A stretch of 64,000 bases of DNA, taken from the NCBI RefSeq assembly GCF_000143415.4, contig NW_003314317.1:1-64000 (forward strand), written 5' to 3'. Both the position numbers and the translations under genes were made by a program. Shown here piece by piece: positions 31,200 to 33,889 of this stretch. Within the stretch, counting starts at the first letter, position 1, and every line of letters begins with the position of its first letter. The DNA comes from Selaginella moellendorffii. Lineage: Eukaryota; Plantae; Lycopodiophyta. The notes below the pieces were generated by a model. That model was given only the letters and a program-made list of their open reading frames with translations. It made no database searches and was not told the origin of the DNA.

Positions 31200-31505
31200 A
31201 TGCACTTGGAGAGCAAATACTATTCCAGCAATGAGACGCACGAGGTTTCGAGGGCAGCAGAAATTGCACGCCTCACATTGGGTGTTTTTGACGAAGCACC
31301 AGTGGGGAAACTTGGGATAACACCCAAAGCATCACAGGTTGTGACGCTTCTCACTCGAAACCAATTCTGGGACTTGTGTTCGGATATGTTGGACGAGCGA
31401 TCCAAGCAGCACGAGGAATGGATTGAGCAGACCTTCACTGATGACCAAGATCTCAACTTCGTGCGCTACTTGAGGGAGGAGGAACGAAAGAACTCTAGAA
31501 AATAA
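31200..31505 (+). other. Orphan ORF or terminal exon (101 aa), possibly a degenerate gene with exon-like pieces from about 30955
   Basis: Protein-like composition and GT/AG-bounded pieces upstream, but the phases do not join cleanly; no family recognised. Confidence 0.3.
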
Positions 31506-31565
31506 GTTTTTGGTCTCCATCATTCTCGTTTTGGAAGTGTGGAACCACAAAGATTCACTAGTTTA

Positions 31566-33889
31566 TTATTGCTTTCGACAAATCCAGAAAGAGCTCGATC
31601 CATAGTCAATCTCTCCGACAGCGCTCGCATCCGCAAGGAAAGTAATGCCAACCAGATTGAGGTTTGCAAACTCACTGTTAGCTGCAGACTCCAGAGCTAT
31701 GGTAGAGATCTGGTTCATTTTCACTTCAAGGCCTGATTTGTAACCTCCCTTTGTGTTTGATATCTCTTGGCCAGTGAAGCCAAGAGATTTCAAGGTTGAA
31801 TTTGCCAGCCAAACTCCGGGAGATCCTAAAATTTATGACAAAGATTTCATTAGACAGCGAAAGTGGAAGCCAATATTGACAATTACCAGTGTCGAGAATA
31901 GCTGGGACTTCAATCTTTGTGTTCCCATTCTCAATTTCCACGACAAGCCAAGGCAATCCACCAAGTATTTTCCCTCTTGTAGCTCCTCTGTATAAAGCAA
32001 TGGTTCATACTTTTGAAATCTATAAATCCAATAGCATACCTTGGAATGCTAGCAGTCTCCAGTATTGGTCGATCGATCAATCTGATCTGCCACGACTCCT
32101 CCGCATCAGGTCCAGCAGAAAAGTCCAGTAACATTCTTGTTTTAGCAGCAAAGAAGTAATTTGACCCCAAGACGAAGCACGGGCTGTCATATGCAACAAG
32201 AGCTCGCACATCCACACCGTTCACTTGAAGCCTTATGATCTCTCCATCGCTTGCCTCATGCCCTTGCCCAAAGACGATGTTCATGTCTTTACCAGCAATG
32301 ACTGTTCCCAGAGCACCAGTGTCAATTGCAAACTCAATATAGCCGCTTCTCTCTGCGTCGACAAACAATGTTGACGTGAAGTGATACTGATCCGTTACTT
32401 TGGCTTCATAGACTGTTGCTGGAAAAGAAGAAGAAAGAAAATAAGGAGAGAAAAGAAACGAAGATTAATATTTTAACACCTTTGGCTCGAGTTGTCACTA
32501 GACTTGACTTTGCAAACGCCAAATCTGTGACAGAGCACATATGTCAATCGAGAGAGAGAGTGAGAAAAAAAAAATACAAACCAGAATATAGAAGGGATGT
32601 TCTCCTGCAGGGGAGACCCAAGGATCCAGTGAAAACTCCTGGATGTCCTGTCATAATATTATATAGATGGTAAAATCAAGTTGTACTTAATGGTTTCTCT
32701 ATCGCGTGTGTGAAGAGACGTCCCCGTGGGTTTGTAGAGCCTCTAACAGACAATGGCTATCTCCATAGATACGACGACGCTATGATTCAATAGTCTATGC
32801 TCTTGAGAGTACTTTCGATAACTAACCTGGACGTGGAGAGTTCCAGCCTGATGGCTCTATCCCAAGAAAGCGCAGTGATTTACAGTCTGGATGTGTGTCG
32901 AGTTAGAAAAGTTCTCGGGGGAACGAGTAACAAACCAGTACGAGCTTTGCCTGCTAGCAGGAGAGCTTGTGGCGATTTTGAAAAACGCGCATGACCTGTG
33001 CCATGCAAAAGGCTAGTTTAAAACGAAAAGTTCTTCAAACACAGATCAACTAACGAGCGCTCGAAGCTTGTCTTGCTTTTCCATGATTGAGCATCGTTTG
33101 TCCAGTCCAGGCCGAAAGTCCTGTGGCTGAGAGGAATAAAACATTAGAAGGTGAAGCCATGAGATTAAATCCCCAAACCAGAACTTAGAGCTTTGCCTGG
33201 TGGTGAACCTGGAATGCCTGATAGCGATCTAGCAAAGAACGCTGTGTTTGTGTGTGAGAAAGATTGATTAAATCGTCTTGTGAAAGCTGAACTAACCAGA
33301 AACTCGGGCTTGGCCTCCAGGTGACGTTGATCTGGCATAAGCTCCTGCTAGGAAAATGAGAAGGTCGTCTTGATAGATCGAAAGCTCCAAGACTCACCAC
33401 GAAGTCCCGCGTCGCAGATAATCTGGAGGCTCCCGGATCCTTCCATCCACGAAAATCTTGGAAAACAAATCGCAAAAGAAAGATCAAATCGATCATTGAG
33501 AACTAACCGGTATTTCGAGGACGATCGCTAGCGCTCATGGTCATTCTCAATCCCGCGTTCTTGGAGGCCAGGAGTCCTGCATTTCAAAGCAGCGGCAATG
33601 GATCATCGCGAAATATCGGCGACCGCGAGACTGGAGGCAAAGAACTGACCGTGAACCGGCGACAATGCGCTCGAATGCTCGAGAATCGACAGCGATCGAG
33701 GGGCTGCCGGATCGATCATCGAGAATCCGCCTTTCTTGATCAAATCCGGATGATGATCGCGTCCTGCATTCGATCATCCGCCACACACAGATGGAAATTT
33801 CCGCAATGGAAGTCGATCGATCTACCCGATCCGAGTGCTAGCGCCTTCGCTTCCAATGGGAATGCCATGCAAGAGCTCCACACCGCCAT
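31566..33889 (-). CDS. 14-exon gene (about 481 aa): phase-1 micro-exon array + tandem retropepsin-like aspartic protease domains
   Basis: Exons 33889-33826, 33763-33650, 33576-33508, 33439-33398, 33347-33297, 33241-33179, 33126-33055, 32995-32936, 32886-32827, 32647-32582, 32524-32480, 32418-32040, 31987-31887, 31825-31566. All are GT-AG and give one open frame; motifs FAIDTGA...VLGSNYF and AILDTGS...LVGITFL...IDY. Confidence 0.75.

Follow-up and report, generated by a model that had tools for sequence, protein, structure and literature searches.

A putative series of ten small phase-1 exons ahead of a predicted aspartic protease in Selaginella moellendorffii

Introduction

In human genes, successive symmetric exons sharing the same phase encode disordered regions, often via internal tandem duplication (PMC3632108). 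Small symmetric exons are also the hallmark of the schistosome micro-exon genes (MEGs), in which exons of 3-81 bp make up most of the coding region and are separated by long introns of up to 5 kb. MEGs encode small secreted products, show demonstrated splice variation and are confined to flatworms (PMC4350168, PMC10526429). Here we analyze a putative array of ten small exons (exons 2-11) in the 5' half of SELMODRAFT_422290, a minus-strand gene of the plant Selaginella moellendorffii that lies in the first 64,000 nt of contig NW_003314317.1 (hereafter, the window), together with the predicted protease encoded by the exons that follow the array (exons 12-14).

As drawn here, the locus resembles the human runs in presenting ten successive phase 1-1 exons (the criterion being at least three), an arrangement in which units can be gained or lost without harm to the frame, and which rests on an unconfirmed splice pattern. 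The encoded peptide is likewise low-complexity, basic and acid-poor, and some neighbouring exons are alike. Unlike the human cases, this is a plant gene with mini-introns, in which homology between units extends to three or four exons only, and disorder is judged here from composition. On this comparison, the array would belong to a known kind of structure, that of successive same-phase exons encoding disorder and often arising by internal duplication.

The comparison with MEGs is less favorable. Both present small symmetric exons in series, and skipping could in principle vary the protein here as well. The introns of the Selaginella array, however, measure 49-73 nt, apart from a single 179-nt intron, and do not reach kilobases; the array makes up 44% of the coding sequence, short of the 'most' that characterizes MEGs, and precedes an enzyme domain; and the product would be a 481-aa protein containing that domain, with secretion and isoforms shown for MEGs and not for this gene. 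The likeness to schistosome micro-exon genes put forward in a preliminary description of the locus hence fails on intron size, array share and enzyme domain alike. The same description considered the architecture unexpected in a plant, but SELMODRAFT_422290 was already annotated.

Results

An open chain of same-phase exons in SELMODRAFT_422290

The array corresponds to the 5' half of SELMODRAFT_422290, a gene annotated as encoding a 'hypothetical protein' of 469 aa in the public annotation (EFJ15877.1, UniProt D8SIJ5). The gene is base-for-base identical in the scaffold GL377621.1 record, with equal coordinates, the window being the first 64 kb of that scaffold. No paper naming SELMODRAFT_422290 was found in the literature, and the gene was not found in the supplements of a Selaginella splicing study.

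On the minus strand, the exon sizes, the GT-AG borders, the presence of phase 1 throughout and the open frame of the preliminary description were all reproduced (Table 1), as were its recurring donors (GTTAGT four times and GTTTG three times). The resulting frame, designated here frame A, is open from the ATG at 33889 through exons 12-14 and encodes 481 aa. Exons 2-11 account for 642 of the 1446 coding nt, the enzyme part encompassing 739 nt, and, of the ten array exons, all but one are no longer than 81 nt. The successive introns measure 62, 73, 68, 50, 55, 52, 59, 49, 179, 57 and 61 nt, and mini-introns of this kind are typical for the gene. Exon 2 is stop-free in frame A and in one other frame, the third containing two stops, and exon 3 is open in frame A only. 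Deleting any single one of exons 2-11 keeps the frame open, in agreement with the earlier claim that any exon could be removed in frame. Since every split codon begins with G or C, the junctions are unable to create a stop.

The array departs from chance expectation

An open path through this region is, by itself, worth little, because dynamic programming counts about 2.85e12 stop-free GT-AG chains that connect the ATG at 33889 with the acceptor of exon 12. The absence of stops was assessed with the exon borders of exons 2-11 held fixed and the sequence shuffled. Frame A presented 0 stops, versus a mean of 8.2 in the shuffles (P about 4e-4). The other two frames of these exons contain 10 and 3 stops, and the introns contain 6-15 stops per frame. 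Chains made up entirely of phase-1 exons of natural sizes were possible in 7% of 300 dinucleotide shuffles, and the real sequence admits 2016 of them. Among roughly 3e7 GT-AG chains of natural size, those composed of multiple-of-three exons were enriched 9-37 times. As a caution, a second frame also permits 528 symmetric chains.

The composition of the region alternates with the proposed structure. Exons have a GC content of 0.53 and a T content of 0.23, versus 0.40 and 0.37 in introns. Significant three-base periodicity was detected in exons 5-10 (chi-square p = 1e-6) and none in the introns, and a leave-one-out periodicity test placed all seven of exons 5-11 mutually in register. Overall, these results are moderately indicative of a chain that is non-random, beyond chance; by them, the blocks act as coding exons, or did so until recently, and are held in one common phase.

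The GC content at third codon positions breaks within the N-terminal region, being 0.62 in exons 1-3, 0.35 in exons 4-10 read in the same frame and 0.44 in exons 12-14. The part comprising exons 1-3 (33508-33889) and the remainder (32480-33439) may have different origins.

Traces of duplication among array exons

The preliminary description proposed that the array had arisen by serial exon duplication. Pairwise comparison of the exons makes this plausible for three or four units, the remaining exons not being detectably alike. The only significant match is that of exons 6 and 8, which have an identical stretch of 12 nt at one and the same offset (p = 0.003 before correction for 45 pairs). The 28-31 nt encompassing the 3' end and donor of exons 5 and 6 are 74% identical (p = 0.07), and exons 6, 8 and 9 present a common short 5' motif. 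Two of the 45 exon pairs had p values of 0.01 or lower, versus 0.45 expected, and no detectable likeness was found in the remaining pairs. No tandem repeats and no inverted repeats were found, and the 12-mer of exons 6 and 8 does not recur as a dispersed repeat within the window. The 179-nt intron 9, which had been thought to hold a dead exon, does contain GTTAG and CACACA...TAG remnants like the borders of other units, consistent with a decayed unit. Based on sequence likeness, a relationship by duplication is hence plausible for three or four of the array exons.

Exons 12-14 encode a predicted two-lobed protease and are transcribed

The product of the exons downstream of the array, about 245 aa long, contains the D-T-G motif twice: FAIDTGA lies in exon 12, and AILDTG|S is split across the exon 13/14 junction. 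Residues 224-469 of the public protein match the Pfam family PF13650 (Asp_protease_2) with 31.3 bits, and the whole protein does so with 28.7 bits, the cut-off being 24.3; single-exon pieces returned no Pfam match. The ESM Atlas model of the public protein, which has a mean predicted local distance difference test (pLDDT) score of 0.56, aligns with bacterial two-domain aspartyl protease families with template modelling (TM) scores of 0.73-0.77 over 223-230 residues. AlphaFold2 applied to the protease without an alignment yielded a pLDDT of 34. On the basis of the PF13650 score, the two D-T-G motifs and the TM scores, exons 12-14 are predicted to encode a two-lobed retropepsin-like aspartic protease.

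The product resembles the bacterial two-domain Asp_protease_2 proteins in its Pfam match, in bearing two D-T-G motifs in one chain of this length and in the structural scores just mentioned. It differs from them in being encoded by a eukaryotic gene with introns, in its long N-terminal extension and in having no sequence relative found. When 1.84 billion representative proteins were searched exhaustively with exon 12 (HMMER), the sole hit was the protein of the gene itself; the full public protein, used as the query of a word-index search, likewise matched nothing but itself, and a word-index search with the C-terminal half gave no match. Exact-protein look-ups of two spurious open reading frames (ORFs), aimed at contigs of other haplotypes or strains, also found nothing. 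The protease may have been acquired from bacteria long ago or may be evolving very rapidly.

About 9.2 million reads were sampled from each of two S. moellendorffii RNA-seq runs. Each run yielded two reads, and all four lie within exons 12-14, for an expression of about one read pair per 4.6 million. A contig from run X1, which is labelled as an organism other than that of the remaining runs, covers 31561-32109 in 436 nt, at a depth of 15.5 with 5 differences. Its splice borders coincide exactly with 31825-31886 and 31988-32039, and it stops partway through exon 12, at 32109. A contig from run X3 corresponds to unspliced genomic DNA. Because the X1 contig is spliced and all reads fall in exons 12-14, the 3' part of SELMODRAFT_422290 is transcribed and spliced on the minus strand. 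The depth of the X1 contig indicates, in turn, much higher expression of the protease part in a close relative or in a different accession than in the S. moellendorffii runs sampled here.

A proposed basic N-terminal extension of frame-neutral exons

The preliminary description characterized the array peptides as rich in S, G, A and R and poor in acidic residues, and this was borne out. The N-terminal 235 aa encoded in frame A are rich in S, A, L, G and R, with 10 acidic versus 29 basic residues and an isoelectric point (pI) of 11.1; the remaining 246 aa have a pI of 4.7. The residues S, G, A, R, P, T and L make up 69% of this N-terminal part, and its grand average of hydropathicity is -0.15. 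The first 22 residues are only moderately hydrophobic and contain one glutamate and one lysine. Residues 83-235 contain 4 acidic and 20 basic residues, and the 6 acidic residues that remain fall in residues 1-82. Organelle transit peptides are N-terminal, hydroxylated, basic and acid-poor, and usually span a few tens of residues. Residues 83-235 match such a composition, but the total of 235 aa is far longer than a usual transit peptide.

We tentatively favor, at somewhat less than an even chance, a reading in which SELMODRAFT_422290 encodes a constitutive N-terminal extension, basic and probably disordered, that is assembled from frame-neutral exons. The blocks would be spliced together constitutively, with exon 4 used in its 42-nt form or omitted, yielding an extension of about 235 aa (pI of about 11), rich in S, A, G, L, R and P, attached to an acidic enzyme body (pI 4.7). 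Its most plausible role would be either that of a targeting leader and spacer or that of a basic pro-segment, remaining on the acidic protease until its removal. Pepsin-type zymogens carry basic pro-segments, and the placement of a basic N-terminal segment before an acidic aspartic protease body is reminiscent of them, as a resemblance only. In contrast with pepsinogen, the 235 aa observed here are several times the length of its pro-segment, with no sequence or structural similarity. The array would have grown by the addition of small exon-plus-intron units with lengths in multiples of three, the gain or loss of which does not break the frame, and its frame neutrality would be a trace of how the region was constructed and not a device for generating many isoforms.

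The frame of the public model and the evidence against the proposed extension

Several observations weigh against such an extension. No read or contig, among the two sampled runs and the assembled contigs, touches any array exon or junction, and an index search identified no RNA-like run with even a twentieth of the words of 32480-33889. In the leave-one-out periodicity test, the register common to exons 5-11 does not extend to exons 2-4. The 42-nt form of exon 4 requires the second of two AAG acceptors. As the preliminary description cautioned, the nearer AAG directly follows the pyrimidine tract, generates a 59-nt exon and shifts the frame. If that form is used with all other exons kept, a stop is reached at codon 138, in exon 6; skipping exon 4 entirely retains frame A. 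The public model, from the Joint Genome Institute (JGI), uses a different frame for exons 4-10. The public frame is preferred by 33 bits under a codon model for which 17 long ORFs of the window served as training set and which picks the true frame of the neighbouring Hsp70 gene and of exons 12-14. Under this codon model, frame A in exons 5-10 scores about -0.175 bits per codon, as wrong frames do, and lower than each of the 228 control windows read in their true frame. Translation of the protease alone could begin at an in-frame ATG at 32540, and searches with exon 12, the full protein and its C-terminal half found no homologues with which the conservation of the frame might be tested.

A rival reading is that the public JGI model, with its 469-aa protein, a 59-nt exon 4 and the middle exons in phase 0, is correct. 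This model omits exon 6 and most of exon 9, runs a 129-nt exon across intron 8 and restores the frame through a 70-nt exon 10. EFJ15877.1 could be rebuilt exactly from the public exons, the first three of which (33889-33826, 33763-33650 and 33576-33508) are exons 1-3 of the chain described here. The model also chooses the nearer exon 4 acceptor, its frame in exons 4, 5, 7 and 10 obtains +7.8 versus -25.5 bits under window-wide codon and position models, and its peptide presents an ordinary residue mix, with a pI of 7.1. Against it, the model needs a 42-nt intron, absorbs exon-like blocks into two long introns of 170 and 236 nt, reads through a normal-looking 49-nt intron and requires a weak GTATTT donor. 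Its frame encounters one stop each in exons 6, 8 and 9, it treats the 12-nt block shared by exons 6 and 8 inconsistently, skipping exon 6 and reading exon 8 in the third frame, and neither relatives nor RNA support were found for it.

The codon advantage of the public frame vanishes when training is performed on the gene's own confirmed exons. Third positions of four-fold degenerate codons are A or T in 67% of cases in frame A and in 64% in exons 12-14, versus 42% in the training set; the gene thus has a codon habit of its own, and the verdict of the window codon model fails for this reason. Frame A is favored by 8 bits under a position model trained on the RNA-confirmed exons 12-14. That the public-frame peptide looks ordinary mostly mirrors the NCA/NCT and GGA codons of frame A, and the public frame is unusually rich in Q and H. 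With the window-wide model pointing to the public frame and the gene-specific model to frame A, codon and position statistics were dropped as a judge of the frame, which composition cannot settle. Two further approaches were discarded. The chain with the best coding score under dynamic programming was rejected as a model because it chose implausible exons of 20-44 nt, and a splice-site matrix derived from window introns was abandoned, the harvest consisting of six candidates, some of them clearly wrong.

Frame A is continuous with exons 1-3 and 11-12, exon 11, if joined to exon 12, being readable in frame A only, and, unlike the public model, it requires no frame-restoring exon, skipped block or 42-nt intron. 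We consider it improbable that the public model is correct, and the frame-A exon chain constitutes a credible correction of it, with splicing unconfirmed.

Possible internal initiation and possible decay of the 5' half

The confinement of all observed RNA to the 3' exons raises the possibility that the protease is expressed from an internal start. Transcription would begin downstream of TATATAAT (32665-32658), the T-rich intron 10 would be retained, and translation from the ATG at 32540 would yield a 266-aa two-lobed protease, similar in length to the closest bacterial structural matches (284-297 aa). The upstream blocks would then constitute an untranslated leader or a separate decaying unit, or be silent. 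Runs X1 and X2 both hold words of the 3' exons and, in the index search, not a twentieth of the array words. Exon 1 received zero reads in the about 9 million sampled per run, though it lies 175 nt from the start of a chloroplast-type Hsp70 gene, and a chloroplast Hsp70 gene is expected to be well expressed.

The silence of the index on the array weighs mildly against its presence on the same abundant transcript, with the caveat that X1 also lacks most of exon 12, which leaves its silence on the array with little weight, and that short exons give few 31-letter words. Intron 10, moreover, is normal-looking (57 nt, 49% T, GTTTGT...CACAG), four reads are insufficient to place a transcript start, and a TATA-like word may occur by chance in AT-rich decayed sequence. 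An internal start also leaves unexplained the presence of ten upstream blocks in one phase, free of stops and with coding-type periodicity. We regard it as unlikely.

It is also conceivable that the 5' half is decaying or was never functional, and that no natural splicing gives the full-length protein. The nearer exon 4 acceptor would be in use, the frame would end in exon 6 of a nearly silent gene, and the open chain would simply be something that can be threaded through permissive sequence. The number of open chains and the 528 symmetric chains of the second frame fit this view, as do the very low expression level, the lack of a homologue among the 1.84 billion representative proteins, the visible decay of one unit in the 179-nt intron and the mutual contradiction of the composition tests. 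The absence of stops in frame A and the in-register periodicity point instead to present or recent coding constraint, and the protease ORF is intact, spliced and expressed at a depth of 15 in a related sample. A decayed 5' half hence appears rather improbable, if slightly less so than a correct public model.

Proposed combinatorial splicing

The preliminary description further proposed that subsets of the array are skipped to produce many in-frame targeting or pro-region isoforms, as in schistosome micro-exon genes. Any subset can indeed be removed without generating a stop, given the 1-1 phase of the exons and the G or C at the start of split codons, and splice-site choice could vary at exon 4, where the acceptor is weak, and at exon 5, where it is tandem. 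The exon 5 acceptor reads TAG|CAG (33345-33350, minus strand), the form in the chain described here and the 48-nt public form being 3 nt, or one residue, apart.

The proposed isoforms nevertheless found no support. No isoform evidence of any kind was obtained, and zero junction reads map to the array. Mini-introns are expected to be recognised by intron definition, under which errors in splicing give retention rather than skipping; the 49-73 nt introns of the array favor this mode. In S. moellendorffii, the main type of alternative splicing is intron retention and not exon skipping (PMC5310277). Frame neutrality, for its part, is also left behind by stepwise duplication (PMC3632108). A combinatorial device is hence very improbable, and the same holds for the broader proposition of a plant enzyme gene, possibly of bacterial origin, with an alternatively spliced ten-exon cassette array that varies a basic pro- or targeting segment. 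If true, such an array would be a plant counterpart of micro-exon-gene variation.

Features and neighbouring genes

SELMODRAFT_422290 lies head to head with the chloroplast-type Hsp70 gene, the start codons being located at 33889 and 34063, 175 nt apart. The segment 33952-34020, between both genes, received zero RNA-seq reads in either sampled run. On the opposite side, a convergent ORF of 101 aa (31200-31505, plus strand) ends 61 nt from the SELMODRAFT_422290 stop codon, and the 3' ends of the two genes therefore probably abut or overlap.

Table 1. Coordinates of the exon chain in frame A, of the public-model exons and of candidate internal start elements in SELMODRAFT_422290.
Feature	Position	Strand	Length and phase	Remarks
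Exon 1	33826..33889	-	64 nt	ATG 33889-33887; common to this and the public model
Exon 2	33650..33763	-	114 nt, phase 1-1	Also in public model
Exon 3	33508..33576	-	69 nt, phase 1-1	Donor GTTAGT; also in public model
Exon 4, 42-nt form	33398..33439	-	42 nt	Second AAG acceptor
Exon 4, 59-nt form	33456-33398	-	59 nt	Nearer acceptor; chosen by public model; frame shift
Exon 5	33297..33347	-	51 nt	3' end and donor similar to exon 6
Exon 6	33179..33241	-	63 nt	Left out by public model
Exon 7	33055..33126	-	72 nt	Borders identical in both models, frames different
Exon 8	32936..32995	-	60 nt	Public model: single 129-nt exon 33012-32884 through intron 8 of this chain
Exon 9	32827..32886	-	60 nt	Public model keeps first 3 nt only
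Intron 9	32648..32826	-	179 nt	GTTAG donor-like and CACACA...TAG acceptor-like remnants
Exon 10	32582..32647	-	66 nt	Donor GTTTGT; 70 nt in public model (to 32578, donor GTATTT)
Exon 11	32480..32524	-	45 nt	In both models; in register with exons 5-10
Exon 12	32040..32418	-	379 nt	Protease first lobe, first D-T-G; 3' end and donor in spliced contig
Exon 13	31887..31987	-	101 nt	Both flanking introns confirmed by X1 spliced contig, one also by an X7 read
Exon 14	31566..31825	-		Includes stop codon; exons 13 and 14: second D-T-G, Pfam Asp_protease_2 match
Public-model middle exons	33456-33398, 33344-33297, 33126-33055	-	59 nt, 48 nt, 72 nt	The third is exon 7 of this chain
Public-model later exons	33012-32884, 32647-32578, 32524-32480	-		Followed by exons 12-14; protein rebuilt exactly
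Candidate internal ATG	32538..32540	-		In intron 10; in frame with exon 11, TGA two codons upstream
TATATAAT	32665-32658	-		In the 179-nt intron 9; read from sequence

Discussion

On present evidence, the array does not reveal a new mechanism. The more unusual item of the locus is perhaps the protease itself, for which no sequence relative was found and which nonetheless resembles a bacterial-type fold. Should the messenger actually follow the all-phase-1 chain, about 125 residues of the public model would be incorrect, and the gene would provide a clean plant case of an N-terminal extension made of small frame-neutral exons and placed before an orphan two-lobed retropepsin-like protease, with a bearing on the acquisition of leaders by lineage-specific genes and on how well short exons are annotated in Selaginella.

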